Assembly: GCA_044892505.1 (NCBI GenBank) | Contig: CM097883.1 | Span: 308,698,001 to 308,762,000, forward strand | From: Schmidtea nova | Lineage: Eukaryota | Reading direction: 5' to 3' | Length of the DNA stretch: 64,000 nt | In this document: one piece after another, positions 2,373 to 27,882 of the stretch | How the letters are laid out: the number at the start of each line of letters is the position of its first letter | Numbering within the stretch: position 1 is the first letter of the stretch | Notes under the pieces: generated by a model | Databases searched by the model: none | What the model saw: the letters and a program-made list of their open reading frames with translations, nothing else | Told to the model about the DNA's origin: nothing | Position numbers and translations under genes: made by a program

Positions 2373-2374
2373 AT

Positions 2375-5008: not shown

Positions 5009-5379
5009 ATGCTAATTGCGACTGAATCTGAAATAATTTCGACCAGTAACAGCACTCTGTTCGATATGCAAGTTCCATGGAAATTGTTCTTGATAATATC
5101 TGTCTTTTCAATCATTTTCTTTCTCTCTGTATTGGGAAACGGCATAATGGTTTGGATCATACTGAGCCAGAAATCAATGAGGAATTCTACGAATTTCTTT
5201 CTTGTCAACTTGTCTGCTACAAATGTGTTAATGGCGGTCACGCATATTTTTCCCAATGTCTACTATTCCGTAAACAATCAGTGGATATTCGGATTGACAT
5301 TGTGTAAGTTATCTCAATTCATCACAGCGTTTTCCGTAACAGTCACAGTTCTGACCTTTATTGGCATGGCGGCAGACAG
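5009..5379 (+). CDS. Class A GPCR, tachykinin-receptor-like, coding exon 1 (N-terminus to DR of DRY)
   Basis: ATG 5009; N-glycosylation site NST; FDMQVPW; TM1 GN; MRNSTNFFLVNLS; W.FG...CK; ends MAADR with a phase-2 donor AG|GTAAAC at 5380, the intron position known from tachykinin receptor genes. Confidence 0.9.
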
Positions 5380-5732
5380 GTAAACATTTTATTCATGAAT
5401 TTAAATTCCAAACCCTTTACGGTGTCTCTTAAGCAGGGTTTTTTATTCGTCGTTAAATACTGTTCCTCAGTGACTTGATTTGAATTGTTGCATTTATTAC
5501 ATGTAATAGCTTTAATTTGTCATCGTTTAGTTTTATCCAGAAGCTCCCCTAAAGCAGAAAATAAAGGGATATAAGTAGAGTAGGGTGAGCGCCCAGAAAC
5601 AAGAACAGACCCCCCGCCCACCCTGTTTTTGTTTTTAATTTTTTTTGTTTAAATTAAGTCTTTATTTTATTTTTTATTTATTTTTATTTATATAATTAAT
5701 TAATTAATTAATTTTTTAATTTTTTAAACAAG

Positions 5733-6215
5733 TAAAATACATTGAAATTATTTTGAATAGGATTTTCTACTCCCAGATTTTTCTCAGGCAAAAAGGGACT
5801 CTAGTAATTTTGAACTAAAATTTTAATGGTAAATAAAAACACACGTAAATTTTTAAACAAATAAAATACATTGAAATTATTTTGAATAGGATTTTCTACT
5901 CCCAGATTTTTCTCAGGCAAAAAGGGACTGGTAATTTTGAACTAAAAGTTTAATGGTAAATAAAAAAATGTGTAAATTTTTTAAACAAGTAAAATACATT
6001 GAAATTATTTTGAATAGGATTTTCTACTCCGAGATTTTCTAGGGCAAAAAGGGACTCTGGAATTTTGAACTGAAATTTAAATGGTAAATAAAAAACACAT
6101 GTAAATTTTTTTTTAAACTAGTAAAATAGATTGAAATTATTTTGAATAGTATTTTCTACTCCGAGATTTTCTAGGGCAAAAAGGACTCTGGCAATTTTGA
6201 ACTGAAATTTAAAAT
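5733..6215. repeat. Tandem array of four ~129-bp units
   Basis: Units start TAAAATA(C/G)ATTGAAATTATTTTGAATAG at 5733, 5862, 5990 and 6122. The upstream CCCCCGCCCC/TGTTTTTGTTTT block (about 5600-5640) recurs near 10230-10320. Confidence 0.85.
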
Positions 6216-6340
6216 AAAGATTTAAGAAAAGTGTATAAAGAAGAATAATTTAAAATAATGATTTATAAAAGAAAATAAAGTTGTTTAAATAAGTAGATTT
6301 ATTGACTGAATAAATATTTAAATTGTCTTATTATCTCACA

Positions 6341-6352
6341 AGCTATCCGGGC
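6341..6352 (+). promoter_or_regulatory. Atypical primer-binding site AGCTATCCGGGC, complementary to nt 1-12 of tRNA-Lys(UUU)
   Basis: Directly abuts the 5' LTR. Its reverse complement GCCCGGATAGCT equals the 5' end of animal tRNA-Lys(UUU) (GCCCGGATAGCTCAGTCGG...). No TGG-starting PBS is present. Confidence 0.8.
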
Positions 6353-7024
6353 ATGATAAAAGATATATTGAATGCAATCGAATGTTTTGATGGCGAAACC
6401 GTGAAAATCGATGAATGGTTCGATAAGTTTGAATTAATATGGAAGCTTCACAAATTCAATGGAAAAAAAGAAATTTTACCTGCTGTCATGAAGGGGAAGG
6501 CATTTATCACCTTGAAGGAAGCAGTGAAAAACGAAGATATTAGTTATGAAGAAATTAAAATATCATTGATACGAGCTTTCAGTGATCCCCCAGAAGCATG
6601 TTTTTCCAAGTTGTTAAACAAGAGATTCCAGATCGGGGACAATATTAACATTCATTTATCAGAAATGAAGAATCTGGCTTGTAACGCTGGAGATCTCTTA
6701 ATAAACATTATAATCAAATCCTTGCCAGTAGAAATCGCAGCTGAGGTGAGACGACAAGGATCAACGACGATCGACGCAATCGGTGACATCGTTTCACGAC
6801 TGAATCTAACTCATGGACATCAGTCTGCCTTTGTGGCGAAGATAAAGAAGATGCAATGTTATATTTGTAATGAAAATCATTTTGCCCGTAACTGTCCGAA
6901 CAAGAAAAAAATTCAATGTTCTAGGTGTGAAATGCTTGGACACCAATCCCGATATTGTAAATCGGGAAAAGACAACGGGATCGAGAATATTCAGGAGTCT
7001 CTCTCGATCCCAAAAAGATGTTAA
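6353..7024 (+). CDS. gag: Gag with two CCHC zinc knuckles
   Basis: ATG at 6353 right after the PBS; CYICNENHFARNC and CSRCEMLGHQSRYC; stop TAA 7022-7024. Confidence 0.9.
   Translation: MIKDILNAIECFDGETVKIDEWFDKFELIWKLHKFNGKKEILPAVMKGKAFITLKEAVKNEDISYEEIKISLIRAFSDPPEACFSKLLNKRFQIGDNINIHLSEMKNLACNAGDLLINIIIKSLPVEIAAEVRRQGSTTIDAIGDIVSRLNLTHGHQSAFVAKIKKMQCYICNENHFARNCPNKKKIQCSRCEMLGHQSRYCKSGKDNGIENIQESLSIPKRC
6964..7011 (+). promoter_or_regulatory. -1 programmed ribosomal frameshift signal
   Basis: In-phase slippery heptamer G GGA AAA (6964-6970), 6-nt spacer, then a perfect 10-bp stem GGGATCGAGA (6977-6986) / TCTCGATCCC (7002-7011). The pol frame is -1 relative to gag and open from 6961. Confidence 0.85.
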
Positions 7025-9696
7025 AAGAAAGACTCCTTTCCATAAATGGATCAAAACGTCTTTGTCTTATAGATTCCGGCTGCTCGACAACAATTATACG
7101 CGGAGAAGCCATCACATCACCCAACGCTCAAGTGTTCCTAGCAGATGGATCAATACTGCCAGTGAGCCAGAGCAAGGCAGAAATCGAATTAGAAGGAAAG
7201 TACTTTATCATTGACTGTTTTATTTCTAGAAAAATGATAGCGGGATATGATGTCATATTAGGTATGAACGCCATTATAGCACTAGGAGGAGTGACAATCA
7301 GTGAAGACGTCAGATTCGGATGTGAATTGAAATGTTTTATGGCTGTAAACGGAAACGAAGCTCAGAGTTTTTTAATTCAAAGGAAGAACTTCGAAGCAAC
7401 GTTCAACAAAGAATGGATGGTATCATGGAATTGGAACACAGAACCCCCTGTATCAATGTCAGATCGATATTCCAAGTTAGATCCAGATAAGCCCAAAGCA
7501 GGCCAGGCTCTCAAAGTCATCGAGCAGTGGGTCAAAAATGGATGGTTAGTCGAATATGACGAAAACCGGTTCGGTAAGCCTGTTGGAGCAGTAACTTTAT
7601 TTCCGGTTATGCAAAAGAACAAGAGCAAAATACGGCCAGTGTTCGATTTTAGAGCTTTAAATCATTATTTAGACGTCTATAGTGGAGAAACAGTAGTTTG
7701 CAATGAAACAATAAGAGATTGGAGAAAGAAGGGAAAGAAAATAGCGATTTTGGATTTATCTGATGCATACATGCAAATCCGGGTTGATGAGAGTATGTGG
7801 AAGTACCAGTCATGCATTGTAAACGGAAGGCGATATGCATTGACAAGACTAGGCTTCGGAATCAATATCGCTCCCAGTATTATGACAGAGATCGTTAACT
7901 ACGTGTTGGGTTTAAATGACAGAATAAAACAAGGAGCCAGTGCGTACATTGACGATATTTTTATCGACGAAGAAGTTGTCCCAGCTGAAGAAGTAAAAGC
8001 CTGGCTAGGAAAATTTAACTTGATGACGAAAGAAATTGAACGCCCCTCATCAACAAAAGCTCTAAGAATACTTGGATTATCAGTTCATATTGAGGATAAC
8101 TTATTAAAATGGAACCGAGCCAATGTCATCCGGTACGAATTTGAAGAAAAGAGAATGGACAGACGAGAACTGTATTCGTTATGCGGTCAATTAACCGGAA
8201 TTCTTCCAGTTGCAGGTTGGTTACGACCCGCGTGCTCTTATCTCAAACGATTAAGCGAAGGAGAATGGGACCGGCCAATCGACGTTCAATTACTAAACAA
8301 AGTTAAATGGTTAATAAAGGAGGTTGAAAAGAATGATCCAGCTCATGGTATATGGAAAGCACCAATGGACAGAGGAAATATTTTATGGTGTGATGCCAGC
8401 TCTATCGCCATAGGAGCAGCGCTAGAAATCGACGGAAATATTATGGAAGACGCATGCTGGTTGAGAAAGGAGAAGGACGTTAGGCACATTAACCTGTGCG
8501 AACTTGAGGCGATCGTTAAAGGCATCAACTTATGCATCAAATGGAATTTAAAGACTGTTAAGATCATGTCGGATAACAAATCCGTGGTAAGTTGGGTACA
8601 TAATGCCTTGACATCCGAGAGAAAGGTTTCAACTAAAGCTTCCTCAGAAATGTTAGTAAAAAGAAGGCTCAACATAATTAAAGAATTAATTATTGAATAT
8701 GAGATAAAGGCTGAAATAGAATACGTTCCAACAGACAAAAATAAATCCGACATATTAACCAGAATTCCCTCAAATTGGATTACGAAACATACGTGTAATA
8801 CGGCGTTGCTAGACCCGGGTGAAGATCCCATCAAGAACGCAGTTGAAATACACAAATTAAGCCATTTCGGAGGAGATCGGTTGAGGTTCTTGACCGAGGA
8901 AGCAGGAATTAACCTTTCTCAAAATGAGTTAAAAGAGATTGTCGAGAAGTGTGACAAATGTCAATCAATAGACCCTCATCCGGTTAAGATCAGCAAAGGG
9001 CAATTAGAGGTAAAAGATTCTTGGAAACGATTAGCTATCGATGTGACTAAATTACATCAAAGAAAATTTTTAACAATCATAGATTGCGGGACTTCTCGAT
9101 TTGCGATTTGGCGAGAAATACGAAACGAAAGCGCAGACGAAATTTGCAAACAGTTGGAACAGGTATTTTATGAAAGAGGACCTCCTGACGAGCTTCTGTT
9201 GGACAATTACTTATCGTTTAGGTCAGAAACTTTCACTTCTCTAATGAAAAGGTGGAGAATTAGAACTGAATTCAGATCCGCTAATAGACCAGCAGGCAAC
9301 GGCATTATTGAGAGGAACCATAAAACAATAAAAGCTGCAGTCACGCGATCGGAATGCTCAGTGCAAGAAGCAATTTACTGGTACAATAATACACCAGTAA
9401 ATGGTTCTTCCAGACCTCCGATAAAAGGCATTTACGCTTATGACCTAAGACTTCGATTTAATGAAACGAAAAGAACGGCTCAACAAATAGACAATGGCTT
9501 TCAGATTAACGACAAGGTGTGGGTGAAACCCGCGCAAAATCAACCATGTACATCTTCCTGGATGAGAGGAAGAATCATGAAGCTGCTGTCTCCGCATAAA
9601 GCAATCGTCGATTACGGAACCGTGGCAATGCCGCGTCATGTAGCTGACTTGAGGCACAGGAATGAAGATTTGTTAGAATCTCGGGGAGATGTATAA
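7018..9696 (+). CDS. pol: Pol polyprotein (protease, RT, RNase H, integrase)
   Basis: Uninterrupted 892-aa ORF: LIDSGC (protease), YIDDI (RT), WCDAS and SDNKS (RNase H), H..SH...CDKC plus D,D35E with NGIIERNHKTIK (integrase); no chromodomain seen. Confidence 0.95.
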   Translation: MLKERLLSINGSKRLCLIDSGCSTTIIRGEAITSPNAQVFLADGSILPVSQSKAEIELEGKYFIIDCFISRKMIAGYDVILGMNAIIALGGVTISEDVRFGCELKCFMAVNGNEAQSFLIQRKNFEATFNKEWMVSWNWNTEPPVSMSDRYSKLDPDKPKAGQALKVIEQWVKNGWLVEYDENRFGKPVGAVTLFPVMQKNKSKIRPVFDFRALNHYLDVYSGETVVCNETIRDWRKKGKKIAILDLSDAYMQIRVDESMWKYQSCIVNGRRYALTRLGFGINIAPSIMTEIVNYVLGLNDRIKQGASAYIDDIFIDEEVVPAEEVKAWLGKFNLMTKEIERPSSTKALRILGLSVHIEDNLLKWNRANVIRYEFEEKRMDRRELYSLCGQLTGILPVAGWLRPACSYLKRLSEGEWDRPIDVQLLNKVKWLIKEVEKNDPAHGIWKAPMDRGNILWCDASSIAIGAALEIDGNIMEDACWLRKEKDVRHINLCELEAIVKGINLCIKWNLKTVKIMSDNKSVVSWVHNALTSERKVSTKASSEMLVKRRLNIIKELIIEYEIKAEIEYVPTDKNKSDILTRIPSNWITKHTCNTALLDPGEDPIKNAVEIHKLSHFGGDRLRFLTEEAGINLSQNELKEIVEKCDKCQSIDPHPVKISKGQLEVKDSWKRLAIDVTKLHQRKFLTIIDCGTSRFAIWREIRNESADEICKQLEQVFYERGPPDELLLDNYLSFRSETFTSLMKRWRIRTEFRSANRPAGNGIIERNHKTIKAAVTRSECSVQEAIYWYNNTPVNGSSRPPIKGIYAYDLRLRFNETKRTAQQIDNGFQINDKVWVKPAQNQPCTSSWMRGRIMKLLSPHKAIVDYGTVAMPRHVADLRHRNEDLLESRGDV

Positions 9697-9969
9697 AGAA
9701 GAATAATTTAAAATAATGATTTATAAAAGAAAATAAAGTTGTTTAAATAAGTAGATTTATTGACTGAATAAATATTTAAATTGTCTTATTATCTCACAAA
9801 AAGGATATTAAACACGTGGTTAAATTAAATAAGCAATAAAACATGGAGAATTTTACAAAAACAAAAGAATGACATAATTTTTAAAATTTATTAAAAAACG
9901 GTAAAATTAAGGCAAAGTCAGAATAATAATAATAAACTTAGAAAAAATTTTGAAAATAAAAATAATAAA

Positions 9970-10026
<57 letters not shown>

Positions 10027-11579
10027 CTTGGAAAAATTTTGAAAATAATATTAATTTTGAAAANNNNNNNNNNNNNNNNNNNNNNNNNNNNNNNNNNNNN
10101 NNNNNNNNNNNNNNNNNNNNNNNNNNNNNNNNNNNNNNNNNNNNNNNNNNNNNNNNNNNNNNNNNNNNNNNNNNNNNNNNNNNNNNNNNNNNNNNNNNNN
10201 NNNNNNNNNNNNNNNNNNNNNTGAACAAGGACAAGAACAACCCCCGCCCCCACTCCCACTCCCCCGCCCCCTGTTTTTGTTTTTGTTTTTAATTTTTAAT
10301 TTTTTTTTGTTTTTGTTTTTAAAATTTTTTATAAAATCTTAAACTAAATACAATAAACTTTTTTATATTGAAATTTTCAAGAGATTTTTATGTTAAATAA
10401 AAAGCACGTGTAAATTTAGAAAAATGTTAAATAGATTTAAATGGTTAAATTAAATAGGCAATAAAACATGGAGAATTTTACAAAAACAAAAGATTGACAT
10501 TATTTAAGAAAACAGAGTGATATCAAGGCAATGTAAGAGTTTAAATGACTCTGGTATTTTTGTATTTGATTTTTTGGTCTGGTATTTTTGAACACAATAT
10601 TTTGGACTCATTATTTTCGATAAAGAATTTACGTCTGGGAATTTCCAAAAATTAAAAAGTGGTCAGAATTCAATAACTTTTATACCAATATACTGAGAAT
10701 TGAAAAGCGAACAATAAAGGTCAAAAAATTAAAATCATGAAAAAATCAAAATTTTATACGGAAAATGTCAGTCTCAGTAAAAGAGGGTAAAATACATAAA
10801 AACGTGGAAATATTTAAAAAAATTTTAAACTAAATACTTAAATCTAAATAAATTTATCATAATTAAATAAAAAAGTAAATAAATTCTATACGAATTTCAA
10901 AACTCAGTAAATAATTCACTGATTATTTTGTATTGAATTTATCAAGTAAAATGGTACATTAAATAAAAGCATGGAAATAATAAGTAAATTAAAGTTAGAA
11001 TTTTAAAATAATTTGTACTGGATTTATGAAAAATGGTAAAGTAAATAAATTAAAGATAGAATTTTAAAAATAAATTAAGAATTTAAAGATAAATAGAATT
11101 ATAAACAAATAATTTTTTAAAAAATAAGTAAATTAAGAAAGACGTGAGTTTTTGTAATAATATTAAAATGAATTGATTTTAAATGAACTTTTAAGGTAAT
11201 ATTTGAAAAATGTGAGAATTATTAAATATTTTTGAAATTTTTTAAAGTAATATATATTTTTTTACCAATAAAGTCAATGTAAAATTTCTTTTTAAACATT
11301 AACCAACAAGTAAATTTTTTAATTAGCAAATACAAAGTAAATATTTTTCACAATTAAAATTTTTAATTAATAAATACAAATCCTAATATTTTTCAATATA
11401 ATCATTTTTAAGGAAATGAACAAATAAATATAGTAAATAAAACACATGTAAATATTGAATTTATTTAGAATAAAAGTAGTTATTAAACAAGAGTTGTTAC
11501 AATTTTGTATAATAAGTTATAAAATATTGAATAAAGACATAAATTTTTAAAAATAATTGAAAAAATGGAAACAAGTAAA

Positions 11580-11590
11580 ATAATAATAAT

Positions 11591-11667
<77 letters not shown>
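11580..11667. repeat. (TAA)n microsatellite
   Basis: Direct reading; other (TAA)n tracts lie at about 9970-10023, 23540-23592, 30165-30200, 38283-38312 and 60720-60751. Confidence 0.95.
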
Positions 11668-11699
11668 GTAACGTCTATCATTCAATCTAAGTACCTACA

Positions 11700-13060
11700 A
11701 TAAACCGATCAACTAACTAATAATCTTATTACACACACAAATCAACCACTGACTAGTAACTGATCAAATGTCAACTGACTCTATCCACAAATCACCAACC
11801 AACTAGTTACTTACCAGTTACCAACTGACTATGCATTAACCAACTAGGAAAATTGTTCCATGTGTCAATCAATTATCTCTTTCTATTAACTAGATATCAA
11901 TTAATCCAATACCCTTAGTTAACAAACAGACCAATTTCTTACCAACCAACTGGTTATATACATCAACCAACTACTTCTATACATTAACCAACTAGTTCTA
12001 TACCAACCAACTAACTACACTAACCAACGAACTAACTATACATACTAACCAGCAACTAATCTCTTACTTACTAACTAGTTCTATACATCAACCAACTTAC
12101 TCTTCTCATTAACCAATTTACTCTATTCACAAATCACCAATCAACTACTCTAACTAACTAACTAACTATACACACTAACTATCAACCAATACTTTACTTC
12201 CAAACTACTTCTTAACATTAATCAACTAGCACTATTCACAAATCACCGATCAACTACCCACTCTATACATACTAATCAGTCAACAATCAAATACTTACTT
12301 ACCAAGTAGTTTTACACATTAACGAACTACTTCTACATGTTAACCAACTAGTTCTATCCACCAACCAATTGGTACTATTCATTAATCTTATACAAACCAA
12401 CCAACTAACCGCTCTATACATACTAACCAGCAAATAATTCGTTACTAACCAACTAATTCTATACATTAATCTTATACCTATCAATCTACCTACCAACTAC
12501 ACTAACCAACTAACTAACTATACATACTAACCAGCAACTAATCTCTTACTTACCAACTAGTTCTATTCATCAACCAACTAGTTATATCCATTAATTTTAT
12601 ACCTATCAATCTACCAACCAACCAACTAACCGCTCTATACATACTAACCAGCAACCAATTTCTTACTAACCAACTAGTTCTATTCATCAACCAACTAGTT
12701 CTATTCATTATTCTTGTACCAACCAACCAACTACATTAACCAACTAACTAACTAAACACTCTAACTATCAACCAATTCCTTACTTCCCAACTAACTCTTC
12801 TCATTAACCAACTAGTTCTATTCATTAATCATATACTAGCCAACCAGCCACTCACTCTACACACTATCCATCCAAGTACTTACCAACTACTTCTATACAT
12901 TAACCAACTAGTTCTATACATTAACCAACTAAATCTATTCATAAATCAACAACAGACTAGTTAATTATTAAATATCATTTGATTCTATCCATAATCAACT
13001 AGTTAAATCAAATAATCGGATACCAACTGACTCTATACATTAAACAAATAATTCTTCACT
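11700..13060. repeat. Degenerate G-poor minisatellite (ACCAACTA/CTAGTTCTAT/CATTAACC units)
   Basis: Recurring ACCAACTAGTTCTAT...ATTAACCAAC motifs with strong G depletion on the + strand. Confidence 0.8.
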
Positions 13061-17249: not shown

Positions 17250-19071
17250 AAGCTATAATTTACCGATATTATTTAATTAAAATGTACTTATCAGATTATA
17301 ATATGAATTATAATGTAAAAATTTTGTAAATCTTTTGTAAATCTTTAATTAATTTTATTATTTTTATTAAATTTTATAAAATTTATTTATTTTTTCAATA
17401 AATAAAATCAACGAAAGCAGTTTTCTAGTGAACCCAATTTCAATAATTGCCTAGTTATTACTGAAGACTTTTATGGTCCTTGAAAAAGAGAAAATTAAAT
17501 ATTTTGATTTCTGAAAGACTATTATCTATATTTATAAATGTTAGCTAAATAAGAGCGCAGATAAAAATCAACAACTTGGATTTGCTTATTTTTTGAATTT
17601 TTATTTTTTAATAACAGAGACGAATGAAAGCTGATGCGAACAGAGTGGTAATGTAAATATGATGACCCAAAATAACAGATATCAAAACATATTTTTATTT
17701 ATAGACTCTATAATGAAAATATTTCTTAAAAATANNNNNNNNNNNNNNNNNNNNNNNNNNNNNNNNNNNNNNNNNNNNNNNNNNNNNNNNNNNNNNNNNN
17801 NNNNNNNNNNNNNNNNNNNNNNNNNNNNNNNNNNNNNNNNNNNNNNNNNNNNNNNNNNNNNNNNNNNNNNNNNNNNNNNNNNNNNNNNNNNNNNNNNNNN
17901 NNNNNNNNNNNNNNNNNNNNNNNNNNNNNNNNNNNNNNNNNNNNNNNNNNNNNNNNNNNNNNNNNNNNNNNNNNNNNNNNNNNNNNNNNNNNNNNNNNNN
18001 NNNNNNNNNNNNNNNNNNNNNNNNNNNNNNNNNNNNNGTATTGTTTAAAAATAAATTTAAGAATAGAATTTGTTTAAATAATTTCTTGCAATATATTTCC
18101 CTGTACTTTTACAAAACATGTATTTTTTGGGAAAAGGCTGGGACCTAGCAGAGATATTTTTAACAATTATATCAGGATAATTTAGAGTGAAGGTATGTTA
18201 CTGTTGTATGTTTGTATAAGTGCAGAGTGCAATAAAAATGTATTTAATAAAATTATATTTAAGACAAATTTAATATGAATAAAACTAATTATATTATTTT
18301 CCAAATTGAAATTTTCTTAATAATAAAAAAACGAAATTTAGTTAATAAAATTAATTACTAACTTTCAATATATATTTTTTAATATTTTTTGATTATTTCA
18401 TTAGGATTATTTTATTATAATGAAATGATTTGTAATTTATTTCTAAGTTAAATTTTTTAAATCAAAAATTAAATTTTTATTATTTATTTTAAATTCCCTA
18501 TAATTTCTTACAATTGAAAATTGATACGCGTACTAGGAGATTATTTAGTTTATGTATGCTACTTTTGTATGTTTGTATATGTACAGAGTGCAATACAAAA
18601 ATAAATTAATAAAATTAAATTTTGAAAAAAAGACAAATTTTATCTCAACAAAAGTAATAACAGAAGTAATAATAGAAGAATGTCATTTAGTTAATAAAAT
18701 TAATTACTAACTTTCAATAACTTTTAACTTAATTTTTTTAAATTAAAAATTAAATTTTTATTATTTATTTTTAATTTCCTACATAATTTTTTACTATTGG
18801 GAATTGATCCGCGTGACTTTATTATAAATTCAGTTATAATTAGTTTAAAAAGAAAATATAAAAATAACATTGTTATGAAGAANNNNNNNNNNNNNNNNNN
18901 NNNNNNNNNNNNNNNNNNNNNNNNNNNNNNNNNNNNNNNNNNNNNNNNNNNNNNNNNNNNNNNNNNNNNNNNNNNNNNNNNNNNNNNNNNNNNNNNNNNN
19001 NNNNNNNNNNNNNNNNNNNNNNNNNNNNNNNNNNNNNNNNNNNNNNNNNNNNNNNNNNNNNNNNNNNNNNN

Positions 19072-19305
19072 GCTGTCCTTAGGGTCCTCTGAAACTGTTG
19101 ATGCATGATATTGTTGGCTTTCTCGACTTGTTAATGGGGCGAATCCTGGAACGAAAAAATGCAAACGTGGAATTGGAACCATGTTAAAGGTAAATTTGCC
19201 CAAATCAGCTTTCAATTGACCAGGAAATACCAAACATGCCGTCCCTCAACTTGCAGCGCTCATCAAATGATCAAATCCCGGTAAGCTGAAGTTGTCGATT
19301 TCCTT
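19072..19305 (-). pseudogene. TUBB: Beta-tubulin internal fragment
   Basis: [40 protein letters not shown] matches beta-tubulin [40 protein letters not shown]; the upstream YGDLNHL region is frameshifted; truncated by an N-gap. Confidence 0.92.
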
Positions 19306-19313
19306 TCATCTGA

Positions 19314-19517
19314 TCACGCGTCTGTAAATTTCTCTAATTCCATCAGACATTTGATTCGTCTGAGTTTGGTCATTTCATCGTAATCGAGATTATATTGAAT
19401 TGCTGAATCGCAATCCATCGGAGCATCGGGATATTTACCAAGTTCTATCAATGAAAAAGTATGATTGGAATAGCATAACGACGTTAATAGCGGAAATTTA
19501 CTGTTACTCATATTCAA
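19314..19517 (-). pseudogene. TPR-domain fragment (DNAJC7-like co-chaperone)
   Basis: CYSNHTFSLIELGKYPDAPMDCDSAIQYNLDYDEMTKLRRIKCLMELEKFTDA follows the TPR consensus (Y.NR....KL..Y..A..DC..AI....Y.K...RR..C....E...A). Confidence 0.65.
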
Positions 19518-19536
19518 CGTTTCAGTATATCTGTCG

Positions 19537-19705
19537 GATGCACCTGTTTTGCCAGTTCCATTTTGGGCTCTAGCAATTACGTCCTCACCTCGTATTATTG
19601 AAGGAATAAAAATAGCTTGAATTGGTTTTTCTTTAGTAAACCCTTTTTTGATGATTTCACCTCAATCTAGACAGATAAATTTGGCTAATTCCAAATGATT
19701 AATCA
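19537..19705 (-). pseudogene. DEAD-box helicase fragment (Q motif + motif I; DDX6/eIF4A-like)
   Basis: KKGFTKEKPIQAIFIPSIIRGEDVIARAQNGTGKTGA. Confidence 0.85.
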
Positions 19706-19939
19706 TTATGCACTTTGATATATTTACTTTAAAAAATATCTGCGTCAACAACAAGGACAAAATGAAACAAAAATTCCAAGCCAGTTATTTATGTTTTTAA
19801 GAAAACTTCCAATTCATCGAAATTTCAAAACAAAAAACTCCCACAAAGACTTTCGAAACTAAACTCTAGAAATCACAAAAAAGGTACAGTAAAACAACTG
19901 CCAAAGTTTATTTCAAAAAACCCATAATTTCATTGATTA

Positions 19940-20023
19940 TTATAAAAACCGCAAAGCCAATTGAACATCCTTGGGTTTGTGTACGCACACCGACCAAGAC
20001 TCCACATAAATGTCATTAAACAT
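19940..20023 (-). pseudogene. Possible histone H3/CenH3 C-terminal fragment
   Basis: MFNDIY...KPKDVQLALRF resembles LFED(A/T)...PKD(V/I)QLARRI, but the match is short and has a gap. Confidence 0.3.
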
Positions 20024-20062
20024 CACCACCGCACACACAGACGCGACGAAATGTATCTTTAT

Positions 20063-20398
20063 AAAGAGCTGTATTGGAAATGTGTCCATAGGCAATAAGT
20101 TTATTGAAGGCAGTCCAGTGCAATGATGATTATTGTTTGAGATTTTTAATTAAATGCCAATTTAAACGGTTGGAAATACTTTCCATTATTCAGTAATGTA
20201 TCGATATCGGATTTAATTGGTGGTAACACAGAACTGACACCATTTTCAACGAGTTTTTCTTTTAATTCTGATAGGACGTTATAGCAACATTTTTTCAATT
20301 CTTGATTGTGATTTTTATTTATTATTTTTATTTATGTCTTTATCTTGAAATATTCTTTGGATTTCCCATATGAGAAAGTTGTCGGTGTTTGATTGCAT
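20063..20398 (-). pseudogene. ARFGEF1/2: BIG1/BIG2 (Sec7 Arf-GEF) N-terminal fragment
   Basis: From ATG 20398: NFLIWEIQRIFQDKD...QELKKCC..VL.ELK...LPPIKS...KYFQPFKLA.. then IALDCLQ(K)LIAYGH, matching human BIG1 KYFLPFELACQSK...SLDCLQKLIAYGH; one stop and one frameshift. Confidence 0.88.
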
Positions 20399-20557
20399 TT
20401 ATTTGGATAATATTTGATATAAAATTTATATAGATTTCGATAAGACCGTCTAACGGCTTCCAGGCTCGCCACAATCTCTCACACCAATCATGACCCACTT
20501 TTAATTATTTAATCTTTATTTTAAATACGTTTTAAATATTTTATGAAGCGGGCGTGA

Positions 20558-20561
<4 letters not shown>

Positions 20562-20610
<49 letters not shown>

Positions 20611-21170
20611 ACAACTCAGCTGCAATTTTCAGACACGAAACAAATTCAAAATATATTAATCATCTTTATTAGTTTAATAGTGATTGCATAATCAAATGTA
20701 AAAAAACATTTGTTACTTTTTATAAAATTAATTAAAACCCACCAAATGCAGGTGGATATTGCATTTTTATATTAATTTAGGAATTAAATTATTTTATAAT
20801 CAAAGCTCCACAACTTATATGTTCCAATTAATGTTTTAAACCATTTTTAATACTATAAACTTTAAAATATTAATTTTCGATTTACATGTCTTATTAGGCC
20901 CAATAAAATTTCTGCTTCCATTTGGGCTTTTGAACCCGTGCTCACAGATTAACGAGCAATTGTTCTAATGTATGCAACATAACACCCATTACAAGTAAAT
21001 GCGATAAACAAAATCAGAACATAAACCAACGGTGTCATAGATTTATTACTGAGCGTGTCACGATCTTTACATACTTGGAAATCATTAACATTGATATTTA
21101 TGAGTTTTTTAAAAAGACTTTATAAAATTTACAAACAATTAAAACTAAAACCACAAAAAAAGTCAAATCT
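20562..21170 (-). mobile_element. Old Penelope-like remnant (GIY-YIG + degenerate hammerhead) ending in (TA)n
   Basis: FTCNGCYVAYI on the minus strand; colinear similarity to the copy at 23600-24635; CTGAAAA-TTGCAGC-TGA-GTTGTT-GA(TA)n at 20562-20632. Confidence 0.75.
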
Positions 21171-23539
21171 TATTTATTTCATGAAAAAAAAAAATTTTTA
21201 AATGATAATAAAAATTTCTTTCTTTCTTTTAGTCAAAATTTAATATCATTTTGTCAATTTCTATAGCTGACGTGACCTCCATTCAATGTTCTTTTATCTT
21301 TTATTATTGTAAAAATAAATAAATAATTAGCCCTGGTGTCTATTCTTTTTCGCTTTTCAATTTTTTTGATTTGCTCTTTATTTTCAATCCCCGGTTAACC
21401 ATTATAATAACGATGACAATAACTATTGTTAAAATAAAATGTAAGTAAGTTATCAAAGTGAAATCAACTGCTTAACGAAAGGAAATAAAGGAAAAACCAG
21501 CTGGAGATGCAGCAAGGAAACTTACAATAGATAACTCGTTTCATTTCGTTGCGCCACGTGGAGAGTGGGTCGTTTAGCAATTGTTTTGGTTTAATTGAGT
21601 CTGGTTTACGCACGAGACAAAACTTTCTCTAAATACCGATATTAAAATATAAAACGAAAAAAAAACATTTTACAAAATATATTTTAGAAACGGCTTAAAT
21701 TTTTAAATAAGTGACAGAAATAACTTTTTCATATGTCTATTATTTCTTTCTGTTAATTGGGATTTATAGGCAAAATGCAACAACTATTGCTGCCTGTCAG
21801 TCTGGTGAATCCTTTGAAACACTTAAAATATTTTTATGAAAAATTATTTGAAATAAACTGCGTAACATTATTAACACCATAAGGTTTTAATAATATTTTT
21901 TTTCCTATTCCGTTGAGAATGTAAAATATTACAATGTATTAATGGGACACAAAAGGTAAAATGTACCGAAAATATCCGAATTTGTAAATTTCATAAATTA
22001 TAATTGTAAATCCCAATGTTGGCGTGGCTCTGTATGCAAAAATAAAAACGAGGCTGAAAACATATGGAAACATTTTTTTCTAATCTAAACTTAATTATTA
22101 AAATAAATACGCGAGAAAACAAAAAGAAAATTTATGGTAACAAAACACTAAATTAAAAAGACATGTATATAAAGTAGGGTTGTCACATTTCAATGAAGAC
22201 AAAAATAGTGACGAATATTATTACTCGTGCAGTTGCGTGCGGTACAAGCCCATATCGTCGGCCTAGCTTAAACATTATGTCCATTTGTTTACGTAGATAA
22301 AATAAAACATGTGAAAAAATTGCTAAAATCTGCATTTTTGAAAAACAGTATTGTAAAATAAAAACAATTAATTCCAATCATGTTATTTGTTTGTAAAATT
22401 GTAATATTTTCTTAAATATTTGCTAAAAACAATTAAATAAAATAATAATAATAATAAATTAATAAAGTTTATTTAATTAAAACAAATTAAAATAAACAAA
22501 ATCATTTCAAATAATATCACAAAACTGAGAAACCTTTACATAAAAGTATTTTTTATTGGTTTTTACACATAAATTGCAAAAATATAATTAATAAAAAATG
22601 CAAATATTTTTTATTCTTTTAACTTGAAAATATCAACATTCCAATCCAATGGAGTCTATTACTGGAGTCGATACTGTTTGATGCCAACATAGCTATCTAC
22701 TCTCGTAATGGTGCATAACGCAGGAGAATTATATAGATCATTTAAGTCGCCTTACAAATCCGACGCATAAAATCATGATTATTCATCACTCTCAAAATCA
22801 CGATTCTTTCATTCAAATAAAACACAAATTGTTAAATTTCATCTTTTTTGTTCTGGCAGTAATTCGCATATTTAATTAAATTGTCTTTACAATTTTCAAA
22901 CAATTATTTTTACTATCAATAGGAACAGGATAGCTGCTTTCAAAACAATCTGGAATGTTCAGTTTTTCATCAACTATTCCATTGCTTTCTTGTTTCTGTA
23001 TTTTAGGTTCAAACAAGAAAATTTCTCTTTTGTTATAAAATATCCTTTTTCTTAGGAAATTAGTTTTATAACATTTTTAATAGTCTTCATTTTCTATTAT
23101 TTTTTTTCAAATATTTTGAAACATTTTTTGATTACTTTTTTCTGATAACTTTACAAATTTTATTTTGTAGAATCAATTTAATACACAATTTAATACACAA
23201 TTTAATACACAATTTAATACACAATTTAATCAATTTAATATGCAATGGAAGATCCCCACTATCAACTAAACTTTGACAAAATTCAGATAATCAGGAGTTA
23301 AATTTTGATAGCGATTCACTTTAATAAAGAAAAATAAATACAATAAATTTTAAATTTTCCATAATAATAAATTTTAATATAATTATAATAATAATAGTGA
23401 TATTAACACTAATATCGTCAACATTTTTAATTTTGATAATTTTATCTTCAATTAAGCACTTGAAAATTTGAGTGTTGAAAATTTGTGTTCAAATGAAAAA
23501 CTTTTGATATTTTGTCTTTAAAAGTTAATATATATGAAC

Positions 23540-23594
<55 letters not shown>

Positions 23595-23599
23595 CTATT

Positions 23600-24635
23600 A
23601 AATAAAAATGGCAATTTATTCATATAAATAAGAGAACACATTTTTTAAAATATATTAATGCAATATATTTCAACAGCTTAGCTGTCATCATCAGGCTTTC
23701 ACAATCTCAATAAAATATAAAATTGATCTTAATTATACGCTTAATAGTGATTACATAATTACATGTGCATAATCCAATAAAACTTTTATTTACCCTAATA
23801 AAATTAATTAAACATTCTCAAAATGCATGTAGATATTGCATTTTGTATATTTATTTTAGGATTAAATGATTTTATCATCAAAGCCTCACAATTCACACGT
23901 TCATAATAATTTTTAAAACCCCTAGAAAGTATTTTGAAATTAGAAATATTAATGCTCTTCTTGCAAGTCTTATTATGCTCAATAATGTTACTCTTTCCGC
24001 TCTTTCTGGCATGTTCTTGAACTCGTGTACAGAGATGACGGGCAGTCTCTCCAACGTATGTGGCATTACACCCATTACAAGTAAAACGATATACGAGATC
24101 AGAACACAGACCAAATGGCGTCACAGAGTTATTACTGAACATGTCCCGAACTTTGCAAGACTTAGAAATTATTTTAACATTAGTATTTCCAATATATTTT
24201 ATAATAGATTTTTTAAAATTTACAAATCCCTCAGAAAAAGGTAAAACTATAACAGAACCAATGTAATCATTCAAGTTACTTTTATTTATTTCATTATTAT
24301 TATTGCAATCAACACCATCATTCATTCCCATAACAACATCACCTGTTTCAATCAAAGGAGCACTATCAGATGTATTAAACGGATCAACACCAGGAGAAAT
24401 TTTTTCATCAATCACATTCAACTTATTAATACACTTATCAACAGTTTCACTCACCATTCGTTGCAAGAAACATTTTGAATATCCATTATTCTGTAGTAAT
24501 TTAAGTAATTTATCAATACTATTTATAGATTTACAATAAGTTGACGGCAATGTCCAAGAACGATAAACCAATCCCCTTATCATATTTCTTTTATATTTAA
24601 AATCACAAAACCTTTCCGGTGATGTATACAAACCA
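23600..24635 (-). mobile_element. Penelope-like element 3' portion (RT thumb + GIY-YIG ORF 23804-24631)
   Basis: (TG)LYTSPERFCDFKYK...LVYRS...LQNNGY; VYRFTCNGCNATYVGETARHLCTRVQEH...EALMIKSFNPKIN; 3' UTR carries a hammerhead motif. Confidence 0.92.
23653..23704 (-). ncRNA. Minimal type I hammerhead ribozyme motif
   Basis: Reverse complement reads CTGATGA-T-GACAGC-TAA-GCTGTT-GAAA-TATATT-GC. Confidence 0.65.
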
Positions 24636-25332
24636 GTGTATTAATAAGTGTATTAATAAGTGTATTAATAAGTGTATTAATAAGTTGAATGTGATTGATA
24701 AAAAAATTTCTCCTGGTGTTGATCCGTTTAATACCTCTGATAGTGCTTTGTAAATTTTAAAAAATCTATTATAAAATATATTGGAAATACTAATGTTAAA
24801 ATAATTTCTAAGTCTTGCAAAGTTCGTGAAATGTTCAGTAATAAATCTGTGACGCCATCTGAACTGTGTTCTGATCTCGTATATCGTTTTACTTGTAATG
24901 GGTGTAATGCCACATACATTGGAGAGACTGCCCGTCATCTCTGTACACGAGTTCAAGAACATGCCAGAAAGAGCAGAAAGAGTAACATTATTGAGCATAA
25001 TAAGACTTGCAAGAAAAGCATTGATATTTCTAATTTCAAAATACTTTCTAGGGGTTTTAAAAATTATTATGAAAGTGTAAATTGTGAGGCTTTATTGAAA
25101 AAATCATTTAATCCTAAAATAAATATACAAAATGCAATATCTACATGCATTTTGAGAATGTTTAATTAATTTTATTAGGGTAAATAAAAGTTTTATTGGA
25201 TTATGCACATGTAATTACGTAATCACTATTAAGCGTATAATTAAGATCAATTTTTATTTTATTGAGATTGTGGAAAGCCTGATGATGACAGCTAAGCTGT
25301 TGAAATATATTGCATTAATATATTTAAAAAAA
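24636..25332 (+). mobile_element. Inverted partial Penelope copy (pseudo-LTR-like), internally deleted
   Basis: Reverse complement of about 23640-24450 with an internal deletion; GIY-YIG ORF 24831-25169; four copies of GTGTATTAATAA at the junction. Confidence 0.9.
25269..25320 (+). ncRNA. Minimal type I hammerhead ribozyme motif
   Basis: CTGATGA 25279-25285; stem II GACAGC/GCTGTT; GAAA 25302-25305; palindromic ATATAT stem III; imperfect stem I. Confidence 0.65.
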
Positions 25333-27882
25333 NNNNNNNNNNNNNNNNNNNNNNNNNNNNNNNNNNNNNNNNNNNNNNNNNNNNNNNNNNNNNNNNNNNN
25401 NNNNNNNNNNNNNNNNNNNNNNNNNNNNNNNNNNNNNNNNNNNNNNNNNNNNNNNNNNNNNATAATTTGACATCTCCCAGTTTCAGTTTATATTGTTTGA
25501 AAAGACTAATAAACATTAAAGCTTTCCATTTCGAGTCCTTTTTAATACATTAAAATAAACTGAATTTTGTCATTGAAACTTTACACTCTTTCATGGGCCA
25601 TACGGATCTCTTTAATTAACGAAGTCTAGCTTTGTGATATAACTTCATAATATTTTTTTATAAAACTGTCTAGTAAATAGTGAAAAATTGCCTTTTAATT
25701 TAGGAAAAATGCAAAAATTCTAAATGATTTTTACATTTGGGAAAAAAGTAAACATCTGGTGGAATAACATCCGCAAACATATGTCAAATCTGCAATCGTT
25801 TTACTTGTAGGTTTGTCGACTTTCGTAAGCTTTGATATAAATTTAACTTTAATTATCAAATATAATTTACTATGTAATTGGCCGATACACAATAAAAACG
25901 GCAAATATAAGTTTAATGGTTGCACAAATTAATTTTAATTTAATTAATGTAAAAATCAGTTTATTTATGGTAAAGAAAATGTGGAAATGTGAGGCCATTG
26001 TGAAAACTAATATCATTTCCACTTGACGCTAAGGTCTCTAGAGGGATTAGTTTAAACAAAAAATTAAATTAATTAATTAAAATGTTATTTACTTCAGTTT
26101 ATAATTATTATTTGAAAAACAAAATATACTTTTTGACAAGTAATATTTGACAAGAATATTACTGCACACGATTGCATTTATCTTCCTAACTTTATTCCAA
26201 AAAAGGGGAACGAAGTTAGAAGACAACTATTAAATGCGTAAGAATAAAGTCTTGCGTCACTGTAAAAAATAAAGTCAGAGTATGTTGACAATTATAATAA
26301 AATTTGCAATTAAATATTCTTTTTTTTATTATTTGTATTCTTTTTGATTCTAAGCTAGTTTGTTCGTATATTATCATTTACATCCCTTAATTTCATTTTT
26401 GATTTTATCGTTTCTACTTCAGAAATTTTAAGATTTTTCATTCCGGTTTGTTTATACTAATTAAGTCTTTTATTAATATTATTTAATTAATTAAACTTTC
26501 TAATTTTCATACTTTTTCGTATACTTTCCTTTTCGTTTTGTTGCCTCTCATCATTTTGCGATTATCTGAATTTTCTTTTGTTTTTTTTTGATTTTTTTAC
26601 ATTTTCTTGCAATTTGCCCCCAACACTTAGACGCATGAATCCAGGTGTAAAAAGCCACGAAAAAAAGACATGGAAAAAAATGCCAAAAACAATTTAGATA
26701 ATGTCACAATTATAAATTCATTTAATGAATATTTAAGGTAAGCAAAGCCATAAAAAAGTATATAAAATGTTAAATAATTTTTCAAATGAAAATCTGCTGC
26801 TTTCCGGTATGCTTTGTTACATACGTATAACCATCTAAACGTAACTTCTTATTTCCTTTCTGACTTTCAATAATTTTATATTCCTTTATGCTTAATATAA
26901 TATGCTTTTTTTCCTTGGCTTTTTTCCCTTAGTTTTTTCCCCCGGCAACCGTTACATATTGTACACCTACATTGATCTTATTTAATAGTATTTTTAATAA
27001 TTTTTGCCGTGCCTAATTAAATTGCTGCATAATTAAATTACCAAATAAATAAATAAATAAAATATAAAATAATGATCAAAACAAAACATAATTAAATATA
27101 TTAAATTATAAATAAAATCTTTAATTTAAACTCAATTCAATCTTAGCAAGTTTTACTTTTTTAATTATAAACAACTGATGTCTTACATTTTAGCTTTTAC
27201 AGAAAGACTCCCAGACCCGGCGTAATGCAGCTCTTTTAATGTAAACATTAAATTGAAAAGGTAAAACTGCGCAATATTTATTTTATGCTCTAACTTTTTA
27301 GAACTCAAAAATACAGAAACGTAATGAGTTAATGGTTAGGATGCTATCAAGCTGATTATTATGATGCACATTGATATAGAAATTGATACCAGTAACTGTA
27401 CCGACTTTCATGGGACTTTGCATTTGGCGCTTGGTTGCTTTACAAAAAACAACTGGTTGTCGAAGACATAATGATTGTCATAGTAATTGACAAAATCATC
27501 GGGCTAAACATCACTAAAAAGAAATTTCGGACTTCTCCATTTTTGACCAAAATGCATCTAGGAAGATATGGTGTCATTGTCTAAACCTGAATGTAGAGAA
27601 AAATTATGACAGCTCTAAGTGGGTAACAGTCTGATCTCACAACAATTCGCTTTATGGTTCTGTGACCTCTTTCTGATATACTGTTTCTGCTATACAACGA
27701 TAATGGCATTTAAAAATTAAAATTTGACAGTTTAAAAAATATTTAAATTGACGGTTAAAATTAAAACAAAAATAACCTTGACCCCTAATTCCGTTATAAT
27801 ATGTGTGCAAGGTAAATATCAAAGATTATGAATTAATATGTATTTTATCATAATTATCTTTTTTCACCTTTGATCTTTTTTT

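Follow-up and report, generated by a model that had tools for sequence, protein, structure and literature searches.

A mosaic of host gene fragments in Schmidtea nova as the probable decayed solo LTR of a non-autonomous, mRNA-capturing retrotransposon lineage

The mosaic of host gene fragments at positions 19072–20562 of the window (the whole analyzed stretch of DNA from Schmidtea nova, a flatworm with trans-splicing, 64,000 nucleotides in length), together with approximately 22 adjoining masked nucleotides, is very likely a decayed solo long terminal repeat (LTR) from a lineage of non-autonomous LTR retrotransposons, in which host mRNAs are captured by template switching of the reverse transcriptase. 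The unit is an LTR, its gene pieces were acquired through RNA, the gene residing in the capture slot varies between copies with older captures stacked behind it, and capture is still ongoing in the lineage, since in one relative (L069) the Per1 piece and its parent exon show 100% identity. The window copy represents an old, dead solo LTR for which a function is unlikely. In an earlier sequence-only reading, the feature had been described as a mosaic of housekeeping-gene fragments at 19072–20500, borne by a carrier that was left unnamed. The mosaic is real, its BIG, DEAD-box and (at the DNA level) beta-tubulin fragments being recovered and its TPR fragment weakly so, but it runs on to 20562 and does not include histone H3. 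The carrier is an LTR and comes from a non-autonomous retrotransposon lineage, not from a Penelope element. The features of the LTR are compiled in Table 1.

Table 1. Features of the LTR and its flank in the window
Feature	Position	Strand	Basis
Decayed solo LTR, visible part	19072..20562	(-)	homology with 19 other copies
(AT)n microsatellite	20563..20608	.	abuts the LTR 5' end directly
U3 head, 105 nt, starting TGGTCACGCCCGC and ending ..GCCTGGAA	20458..20562	(-)	79-88% across LTR sub-families
Spliced leader (SL) relic, 42 nt	20416..20457	(-)	40/42 identical to SL exon L068:1491-1532
BIG/Sec7-GEF mRNA 5' end	20052..20415	(-)	91-92% DNA identity to host gene
Conserved block with 14-mer GCGTCTGTGTGYGC and degenerate inverted partner	19960..20051	(-)	sub-family comparison
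Non-coding spacer	19707..19959	(-)	no ORF; conserved among family copies
DDX6/Dhh1-like DEAD-box piece	19539..19706	(-)	Pfam DEAD E 2.5e-5
TPR-repeat piece	19317..19538	(-)	in-frame fusion to DEAD-box piece
Internal beta-tubulin piece, approximately residues 215-288	19088..19302	(-)	81% DNA identity to host genes L032/L033
Start of LTR 3' terminal module	19072..19087	(-)	rest masked; paralogues end ..GGTCAACCA

The BIG, DEAD-box, TPR and beta-tubulin pieces are all co-oriented, as first described. The almost end-to-end joining proposed for them applies to the DEAD-box, TPR and tubulin pieces, which are directly adjacent, whereas approximately 345 nt of non-coding sequence lie between BIG and DEAD-box. 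The BIG piece features a 17-nt 5'UTR, an ATG at 20398–20396 and approximately 115 codons, interrupted by one TAA stop and a 1-nt insertion. Its parent was located at 396.397 Mb (G000:C1:396397417-396397761; E 1e-144), where the matching segment is part of an 874-aa open exon with a DCB domain. The DEAD-box piece extends from an ATG via the Q motif to motif I (GTGKTGA) and contains one in-frame stop; its best relatives of solved structure are Dhh1/CGH-1/DDX6 (E 3.5e-6). The TPR piece is weak in the window (Sec72/SPAG1 TPR match, E 0.004–0.01), and in four sibling copies TPR_1 reached E-values of 2e-5 to 2e-4, all of them under the Pfam cut-off. The parent genes of these two pieces were sought in the genome and not found, the searches being swamped by LTR copies. 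The beta-tubulin piece, carrying a frameshift and stops, matches its host genes with an E-value of 2e-56, and the parent has no intron across the captured stretch; the more than 80 tubulin loci may include a closer paralogue. Regarding the possible H3 fragment, only a 10-residue look-alike (PKDVQLALRF) was seen near 19975, its likeness being partly due to copy-private changes. The spacer may derive from the DEAD-box mRNA, as its 5'UTR, or consist of older debris. The 14-mer of the conserved block was also considered as a host promoter motif and rejected, since LTRs carry it and the BIG parent locus does not.

Positions 19072–20562 represent one copy of a dispersed repeat with 80–89% identity between copies, and a genome search with it resulted in 1716 first-look candidates and 65 scored matches. 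The mosaic, which could have been taken for a local one-off chimera, is thus a replicated unit, of which the window copy is a solo LTR; it occurs with fixed ends at dozens to hundreds of loci. Because the same mosaic recurs at dozens of loci on three chromosomes, exons of real genes at this locus and an assembly chimera are excluded as explanations of the mosaic structure as such. Homology with 19 other copies extends from 20560–20571 to the mask border and, in the paralogues, for approximately 22 nt beyond; below 18883 and above 20571, homology among copies ends. Judged by the register with the paralogues, the 3' end of the window LTR should therefore lie approximately 22 nt into the masked region 18883–19071, which was left unread, and the CA end, target duplication and solo status of this copy were deduced from paralogues. 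The solo status was also deduced from the surroundings, since a search for a primer-binding site (PBS), a polypurine tract (PPT) and a second LTR near the window copy returned none, the window containing one LTR only. The analysis of the paralogue 3' ends drew on the last 9 nt, coordinates and a conservation profile without letters; two loci representing the same place as the window copy (L001 and L041) were left out of all analyses, their lengths and N counts alone being tallied.

The (AT)n microsatellite is the probable insertion target of the window LTR. AT-rich microsatellites were also detected on both sides of the sibling LTRs L002, L009, L069 and L071, and at the 3' end of L006, L010 and L012. 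A non-LTR or SINE-like reading, suggested by the first BLAST pattern of apparent 5' truncation and microsatellite tails, was rejected, as most copies keep both ends around a variable middle. A tRNA scan of the window found none.

The LTR hallmarks were obtained mainly from relatives. The start TGGTC.. at 20562 is common to the window and all copies, and the paralogues end in ..ACCA. Full elements (L069, L070 and L071) are bounded by direct repeats of 1.75–2.0 kb with a pair identity of 99.8–100%, and both of their LTRs open with the same head as window positions 20562–20458. In full relatives, the 5' LTR ends in ..CCA, after which comes TGGTAGCAGAGCGTGG.., a tRNA-type PBS, while AAAGGGGGGGAA, a PPT, directly precedes the 3' LTR. 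The PBS was detected after the LTR in L005, L016 and L069–L071, L005 and L016 being members of the window's own family, and the purine tract before the LTR in L018 (also of this family), L058, L062 and L069–L071; in L016, the LTR and PBS are followed by a second, truncated LTR. Target duplications of 5 bp were identified at L003 (CTGTG), L004 (AACAT), L019 (ATCAT) and L070 (GACGA). L002 and L009, which lie within microsatellites, are consistent with a 5-bp duplication, and L010 matches in four of five positions; a clean duplication is absent at L013 (3/5) and L015 (2–3/5). At the unit ends, neither a poly(A) tail nor terminal inverted repeats beyond TGGT/ACCA (4 nt) were present.

The internal regions of approximately 3.1 kb comprise HSP90 and ubiquitin pieces and a conserved protein of 616 aa, and young related elements retain a long chimeric reading frame. 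Since no PR, RT or IN domains were found in these internal regions, the elements of the lineage are regarded as non-autonomous. An autonomous gag-pol partner was sought and not found; a compact Gypsy element at 6232–9798 was rejected in this role, having LTRs of 110 nt and no matching PBS or head. The lineage is probably derived from BEL/Pao elements, an assignment that rests on sub-threshold matches to the Pao-type domains DUF1759 (E 0.0017) and Peptidase_A17 (E 0.06). An Atlas search with the 616-aa protein yielded no match.

Passage of the captured pieces through RNA is evident from the spliced leader and from missing introns. In the window, the SL relic fills the interval between U3 and the BIG 5'UTR exactly. 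Homology to the BIG parent begins at the ttttttAG acceptor, the BLAST alignment being approximately 10 nt longer by chance, and the parent locus contains the acceptor site only and no SL. The true SL RNA gene (L068) features the exon, a GTACGG donor, an AATTTTT Sm-like site and a stem-loop; its upstream region is unlike the U3 head, and a contig from this gene diverges exactly at the first SL base. The 105-nt head was accordingly rejected as an SL RNA gene promoter, and also as a small RNA in the style of U6 chimeras, Rfam finding nothing in it. Within the sample, 44 of 47 SL copies directly follow a U3 head, with one SL per LTR, and 44 of 46 U3 heads are followed by an SL, the sample having been collected partly with the SL pattern. 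The genome contains approximately 1,200 occurrences of a 28-mer spanning the U3/SL junction, against 0 in the control. In L005 and L009, U3 is joined straight to an mRNA without SL, indicating that SL homology is not required for every capture. The PIP5K piece in L009, a member of the window family with the same slot, consists of seven joined parent exons from which all six introns are gone, two of them 13–15 kb in size, and the Per1 piece of L069 lacks a 20-kb intron. This loss of introns from sibling captures, up to 20 kb in size, points to the RNA route when the parental introns are inspected as the sequence-only reading had suggested. Its proposal that a capture mechanism operates in this genome is borne out, and among the routes it listed, reverse transcriptase switching on mRNAs is favored by the SL relic at the junction and by the introns spliced out of sibling captures. 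Literature searches recovered neither the SL sequence as text nor any report of SL-bearing LTR captures.

The general layout of the LTRs comprises the U3 head, the SL relic, a slot with the 5' end of one host mRNA, and older truncated pieces. The U3 head is common to many LTR sub-families whose bodies are otherwise unrelated. Across approximately 35 LTRs, at least 20 different sequences were detected after the SL; the slot is occupied by BIG in the window, sibling LTRs having at least 20 other genes there, and its contents include BTB, SMC_N, PIP5K, LEM, SIKE, DCB, CHGN, Per1 and WD40. Four public contig sets from one study (contig type unspecified) displayed k-mer depths of 43,000–62,000 for the SL, 25–320 for the slot and approximately 500–12,000 for the remaining LTR, and many different continuations begin after the last SL base in these sets. 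Stacking was observed directly in L064 and L065, where a new gene is followed by the last approximately 35 nt of the BIG piece and then by the conserved block, and in the L048 family, where 30 nt of another mRNA precede a 5'-truncated BIG. Identity to the parent in the window is 91–92% for BIG and 81% for beta-tubulin, an age gradient limited to these two points, as the searches did not recover the parents of the DEAD-box and TPR pieces. The captured gene stops directly at the conserved block in many sub-families, and at least ten different genes share this end, which would not be predicted for many independent captures with a purely random switch point.

To account for this layout, the following course is proposed. 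The element itself would own three parts of the LTR, namely the 105-nt U3 head with its TG start, the conserved internal block and a short 3' end in CA, and the remaining LTR sequence would be host mRNA acquired via RNA. In minus-strand strong-stop synthesis, the reverse transcriptase would quit the element RNA for a host mRNA and copy it, with the 42-nt SL, as far as the capped 5' end, and the first strand transfer would then join the copied mRNA end to U3. A new LTR would therefore be composed of U3, SL, the 5' part of the new gene and the remainder of the old LTR. Because the transcribed part of such an LTR would start with the SL, which is common to trans-spliced mRNAs, the SL could be used as homology for the next transfer. 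Captures would repeat, each newcomer adjoining U3 and removing the front of the previous capture; the order in the window would accordingly run from the youngest to the oldest piece, with BIG (SL, 5'UTR and ATG) followed by the truncated DEAD-box, TPR and beta-tubulin pieces. The element, once amplified, would have been reduced to a solo LTR and then decayed. We infer a transcription start at the U3/SL border and a switch of the reverse transcriptase at the stage of minus-strand strong-stop synthesis, and rejoining of U3 is perhaps achieved by an SL-guided strand transfer. Only tentatively, and at somewhat less than even chances, do we suggest that the SL was co-opted as the R region guiding first-strand transfer, which would let the lineage sample the host transcriptome in a self-perpetuating manner. 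Should the SL act as R, any trans-spliced mRNA met by the reverse transcriptase could enter both LTRs beside the promoter, gene 5' ends with start codons would stack behind a mobile promoter, and captured starts in young elements would feed the long frame running into Gag.

The best-surviving alternative shares the LTR and the RNA captures and differs in the mechanism, assuming a very short R (..GAAGCC) and the SL as a passenger rather than a guide. The reverse transcriptase would jump end-to-end from the element RNA 5' end (in the conserved GGCAAATTT block) onto a host mRNA, and from the mRNA cap to the RNA 3' end with 0–3 nt of microhomology (GCC). The SL-less LTRs L005 and L009 agree with this route, as do the heptamer GGAAGCC duplicated at the junction in L058, L062, L071 and L009, the common end of at least ten genes at one block, and the SL start GCC, which equals the end of the ..GAAGCC junction in L005 and L009. 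We nevertheless judge it unlikely, since the switches in L064/L065 and the L048 family lie inside an earlier captured gene and not only at the block. Furthermore, the SL at 44 of 46 heads far exceeds the share of chimeric transcripts reported to be trans-spliced in a related species, 12.5% (PMC10899757), an argument that is weak because the sample was partly gathered with the SL pattern.

Far less probable is a one-off chimeric retro-pseudogene, a dead mosaic produced by a LINE- or Penelope-type reverse transcriptase hopping between mRNAs in target-primed reverse transcription. Such an event would agree with the co-oriented, intron-free, decayed pieces and with the AT-rich microsatellites seen after several copies, but the whole unit occurs with fixed ends at dozens to hundreds of loci, its relatives feature PBS, PPT, identical LTR pairs and 5-bp duplications, and its ends are TG..CA without a poly(A) tail. 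Neither a hammerhead nor a reverse transcriptase remnant adjoins the mosaic, contrary to the Penelope remnant with hammerhead initially placed just upstream. Rfam detected no hammerhead in the whole window at the gathering score, none at E≤5 in 18000–23000 and none at E≤1 in 23000–26000, and ORFs in 20600–23000 had no RT-like Pfam match; the feature thus differs from Penelope-like elements, there being no hammerhead in the terminal repeat and no RT-like ORF upstream. L1-mediated chimeric retrogenes of the U6-mRNA type arise by target-primed reverse transcription and do not replicate further; they bear poly(A) tails and long duplications of variable length. Such retrogenes and mosaic retro-pseudogenes share with the LTRs studied here the head-to-tail, same-sense RNA joins and template switching at RNA 5' ends, whereas LTR ends, PBS and PPT in relatives, 5-bp duplications and continuing replication set the present lineage apart from the L1 products.

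DNA-level capture by a Helitron, Pack-MULE or other cut-and-paste element is extremely improbable, for although such elements bear co-oriented gene pieces and many of the insertions lie in AT-rich sequence resembling Helitron targets, the SL is fused to the BIG 5'UTR while the parent locus has an acceptor site only, introns of up to 20 kb are missing from sibling captures, and the ends (TGGTC../..ACCA, inverted over 4 nt only, with duplications of 5 bp and not 8–11 bp) are not the TC..CTRR with 3' hairpin of Helitrons, those of Helentrons or those of TIR elements, in agreement with the initial remark that no Helitron or MULE ends are visible.

If the reading as an mRNA-capturing LTR is correct, a whole LTR lineage (approximately 1,200 U3/SL junctions) spreads promoter-proximal host mRNA parts over a genome of 1.25 Gb. 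This would provide a steady source of exon shuffling and of new chimeric frames bearing start codons, as well as of sense/antisense transcripts and small RNAs matching housekeeping genes, and would be liable to mislead gene annotation and the assembly of transcripts in genomes of the planarian type. We know of no earlier case of a host-wide RNA tag supplying homology for retroelement strand transfer; if true, it would be the first.

In dinoflagellates, SL relics occur in genomic gene copies referred to as 'recycled cDNAs'. There, too, a DNA-encoded SL before a gene marks passage through a mature mRNA, but those are gene copies and not transposon cargo, and they have no fixed junction with a promoter module. 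Pack-MULEs and Helitrons likewise amplify co-oriented mosaics of host gene fragments, whereas their capture is at the DNA level with introns kept and with TIR or TC..CTRR ends, features that were looked for here and not found. The Bs1 element of maize is an LTR retroelement with three transduced host gene segments and a chimeric ORF (PMC13317346). It resembles the lineage described here in being non-autonomous and carrying intron-free, co-oriented pieces of several unrelated host genes. In Bs1, however, the pieces reside in the internal region and not in the LTR itself; in the lineage studied here, captures occur in series and in large number (at least 20 genes in a single fixed slot), and pieces in the slot begin at the mRNA 5' end, mostly with a spliced leader (absent in L005 and L009). 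Abnormal template switching into LTRs was described for BARE-2 and the Veju TRIM by Sabot and Schulman, as cited in PMC13317346. As in those cases and in oncogene transduction, the reverse transcriptase would change between co-packaged RNAs, and both LTRs inherit foreign sequence, but the known cases are rare, single events, and retroviral oncogene capture starts from read-through transcripts and places the gene in the body. Unlike in those systems, the junction here is the U3/RNA-start border, and the host-wide 42-nt leader may supply the homology.

As a minor observation outside the LTR, a hammerhead-like core string was seen at 23668–23694, 3.1 kb away and within a separate inverted-repeat element.

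The carrier of the gene-piece mosaic, which the sequence-only reading had left without identification, was found to be an LTR retroelement. In the 1.25-Gb genome, the 1.4-kb mosaic yielded 1716 first-look candidates, and its 65 scored matches showed 69–97% identity (79–89% for the long ones of about 600 nt or more). Multiple copies with shared termini were obtained: homology to 19 other copies begins at 20560–20571 and reaches the border of the masked stretch, and the homology among paralogues stops approximately 22 nt past this border, at ..GGTCAACCA. The comparisons excluded L001 and L041, two loci that cover this same position unmasked. Both ends are kept in most copies, and the middle part varies copy by copy. 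A head-region 34-mer has about 940 occurrences in the genome, often as same-strand pairs 4–5.6 kb apart. Three such pairs (loci L069, L070, and L071) are direct repeats of 1.75–2.0 kb with 99.8–100% identity, each repeat opening with the 105-nt head found in the window. Their left repeat finishes with ..CCA; next comes TGGTAGCAGAGCGTGG.., a primer-binding site (PBS) of tRNA type, which may resemble the initiator tRNA 3′ end. AAAGGGGGGGAA lies before the right repeat, and GACGA is present on both flanks of L070.

In the window's own family, a PBS follows the LTR in L005 and L016, a purine tract precedes it in L018, and 5-bp duplications were detected in L003 (CTGTG), L004 (AACAT), and L019 (ATCAT). 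Because the window holds a single repeat, with neither PBS, purine tract nor second head within it and no homology below the mask to the L005 or L016 internal regions, we read this copy as a solo LTR, whose own 3′ end and duplication would lie under the mask. It is old and dead; the lineage behind it is unusual. AT-rich microsatellites, e.g., (AT)n, (AAT)n, and (ATAAC)n, often surround LTRs of the lineage (the window copy, L002, L006, L009, L010, L012, L069, and L071), which suggests an integration preference for such sequences.

The minus-strand fragments described earlier between 19072 and 20500 proved largely real. The host locus matching the BIG piece encodes, within an 874-aa open exon, the DCB domain of an exchange factor of BIG/Sec7 type, and the beta-tubulin and DEAD-box pieces were likewise recovered. 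For the TPR piece, the reading frame carries on from the DEAD-box piece, and the match in the window copy is weak; in four better-preserved sibling copies, TPR_1 was detected with E values of 2e-5 to 2e-4, under Pfam's cut-off. The possible H3 piece was reduced to a look-alike, its resemblance being owed partly to changes private to the window copy. As a separate observation, more than 80 loci across the whole genome have long open frames that include a complete Tubulin_C domain, with clusters including C2:230.2-230.4 Mb and C2:138.36-138.84 Mb, and represent either an unusually large gene family or many retrocopies.

Coordinates of features in the window
Feature	Position	Strand	Remark
(AT)24 run	20561-20608		adjoins start of homology
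U3 head	20562-20458	-	105-nt LTR start
Spliced leader (SL) copy	20457-20416	-	42 nt, 40/42 match to SL RNA gene exon (L068:1491-1532)
BIG piece	20426-20052	-	host locus G000:C1:396.397 Mb, 375 columns, 91%, E 3e-153; second alignment to same locus 92%, E 1e-144
Conserved block	19960-20051	-	contains GCGTCTGTGTGCGC; common to many LTR sub-families
H3 look-alike	near 19975		10 residues
DEAD-box piece	19706-19539	-	Q motif to motif I; nearest Dhh1/CGH-1/DDX6
TPR piece	19538-19317	-	
Beta-tubulin piece	19302-19088	-	DNA 81% identical to two clustered host beta-tubulin genes
Masked stretch	18883-19071		
Triple direct array of GCGTCTGTGTGCGC	44569-44657	-	
Triple direct array of GCGTCTGTGTGCGC	46274-46365	+	
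(ATA)n run	near 44225		
Hammerhead-like core string	23668-23694		
Inverted-repeat element	23641-25332		arms ~590 nt, 96-98% complementarity
Third copy of CTGATGATGACAGCTAAGCTGTTGAAA	60798-60824		identical
Gypsy-like element	6232-9798		identical 110-nt LTRs, spacing 3458

The BIG piece and the head are separated by a copy of the trans-spliced leader. Bona fide SL RNA genes, at least three of them, are clustered in L068 (G000:C2:409.013-409.018 Mb), a finding suggestive of a planarian-type flatworm as host. In each gene, a 42-nt exon that closes with ATG is accompanied by a GTACGG donor, an AATTTTT site of Sm-like type, and a stem-loop on the 3′ side; the upstream region of these genes differs from the LTR head. 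The ttttttAG acceptor of the parent, located 17 nt ahead of the ATG, is where BIG homology begins, the BLAST alignment overshooting this acceptor by ~10 nt by chance. Since the SL stands at the junction, the homology starts at the parental acceptor, and the parent locus itself has no SL, the BIG piece is, judged from these sequences, a copy of a mature, trans-spliced mRNA. No introns occur in the BIG and beta-tubulin stretches of the parents, which are hence uninformative for an intron comparison; sibling LTRs are informative. In the same slot (the host-mRNA position after the SL) of the same family, the PIP5K piece of L009 corresponds to seven parent exons (91–97% identity) and is missing six introns, two of them 13–15 kb long. 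The Per1 piece in the young L069 LTR lacks a 20-kb intron. The route of capture is RNA. Being 100% identical to its parent exon, the Per1 piece also indicates that capture went on until very recently.

Among the sequences examined, 44 of the 47 SL copies stand straight after the U3 head, the remaining three being two real SL genes and one copy inside a truncated LTR. The U3|SL 28-mer has ~1,200 genomic occurrences and none in the control. After the SL, at least 20 different sequences were found in ~35 LTRs, most of them opening with a short 5′UTR and an ATG, and the cargo includes BTB, SMC_N, PIP5K, LEM, SIKE, DCB, CHGN, Per1, and WD40. In contigs of four public runs (one study, type unknown), compared with one young LTR, summed k-mer depths were 43,000–62,000 on the SL, 25–320 on the slot, and ~500–12,000 on the shared 3′ part. 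In these contigs, several different continuations start past the last SL base, and an SL-gene contig departs from the LTR at the first SL base. Across the window, the 14-mer GCGTCTGTGTGCGC of the conserved block has 7 matches (0.02 expected), including two arrays facing away from each other, toward AMD1-like and ABCD-like gene pieces. Both arrays probably belong to related LTRs, with one LTR ending at the (ATA)n run.

The layout of sibling copies revealed how pieces accumulate. In L064 and L065, the SL is followed by a different gene, the final ~35 nt of the BIG piece, and the conserved block; in the L048 family, 30 nt of another mRNA precede a 5′-truncated but longer BIG piece. New pieces therefore enter beside the SL, removing the front of the preceding piece. 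For this reason, only the U3-nearest piece has a 5′UTR and ATG, and the DEAD-box, TPR, and tubulin pieces, their fronts cut off by newer captures, are internal fragments. Parental identities in the window (BIG 91–92%, tubulin 81%) fit such stacking, on two points only, and there may be a closer tubulin paralogue than the one giving 81%. L048–L056 (e.g., G000:C3:56.726 Mb) represent a second LTR family of more than 20 copies, whose BIG DCB-domain piece is partly open, with frames of 150–240 aa. Since this family also carries the piece, the BIG host gene was captured on two occasions or else handed from one sub-family to another.

To our knowledge, the U3/R border is the sole place in an LTR element where the promoter module and the RNA 5′ end meet. 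It arises during the first strand transfer. In what we infer to be the simplest account, reverse transcriptase would move from element RNA to a host mRNA during minus-strand strong-stop synthesis, copy it up to the capped end, and then transfer to the RNA 3′ end and continue into U3. With an R starting with the SL, any trans-spliced mRNA would supply 42 nt of homology for strand transfer, rendering captures repeatable and the junction exact. A very short R combined with end-to-end jumps is kept as a rival, and would fit the LTRs in which the head is joined straight to an mRNA without SL (L005, L009, and a few others), the GGAAGCC heptamer duplicated at some junctions, and the many captures ending repeatedly at the block GGCAAATTT..GCGTCTGTGTGCGC.

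Transduction of host-gene pieces by LTR retroelements is known from Bs1, as are template switching of an abnormal kind into LTRs (BARE-2, Veju) and the capture of oncogenes by retroviruses (PMC13317346). In contrast to these cases, the cargo here resides at the U3 border, inside the LTR itself, and the captures are regular and numerous, always begin at the mRNA 5′ end, and carry the SL at the junction. No report of SL-bearing host-mRNA captures in LTRs was found in the literature search; the LTR-to-acceptor splicing described for a cestode TRIM (PMC4558846) is a different phenomenon.

Young relatives have internal regions of ~3.1 kb that code for pieces of HSP90 and ubiquitin together with a 616-aa protein. 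Conservation of this protein is 96–100% across at least 71 scored copies, from 3937 first-look candidates. As neither protease, RT nor integrase was found in these regions, the lineage is non-autonomous; sub-threshold DUF1759 and Peptidase_A17 matches hint at BEL/Pao ancestry. L069 1669-8539 (G000:C1:92.885 Mb) and its relatives form an LTR family that is both abundant and very young. Its frames are intact, ~1,300 aa long; they begin inside the LTR, cross the PBS, and contain FKBP or FHA, HSP90, and ubiquitin pieces, then the 616-aa protein. Some copies are in tandem with a period of 4.07–5.3 kb, e.g., six units at C1:485.05 Mb. The compact Gypsy-like element in the window was rejected as kin, since its head differs and it lacks a PBS that matches.

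The Penelope remnant with an adjoining hammerhead, proposed upstream of the mosaic, was not borne out: ORFs there had no RT-like match, and Rfam searches were negative (window, gathering score; 18000-23000, E<=5; 23000-26000, E<=1). A hammerhead-like core string lies 3.1 kb off, inside a separate inverted-repeat element. This string, CTGATGATGACAGCTAAGCTGTTGAAA, stands near both outer ends of the element and combines a 6-bp helix II with a possible helix III (Rfam E>1, unrecognised). The element may be the source of the proposed Penelope hammerhead, and the string recurs once more toward the far end of the window.
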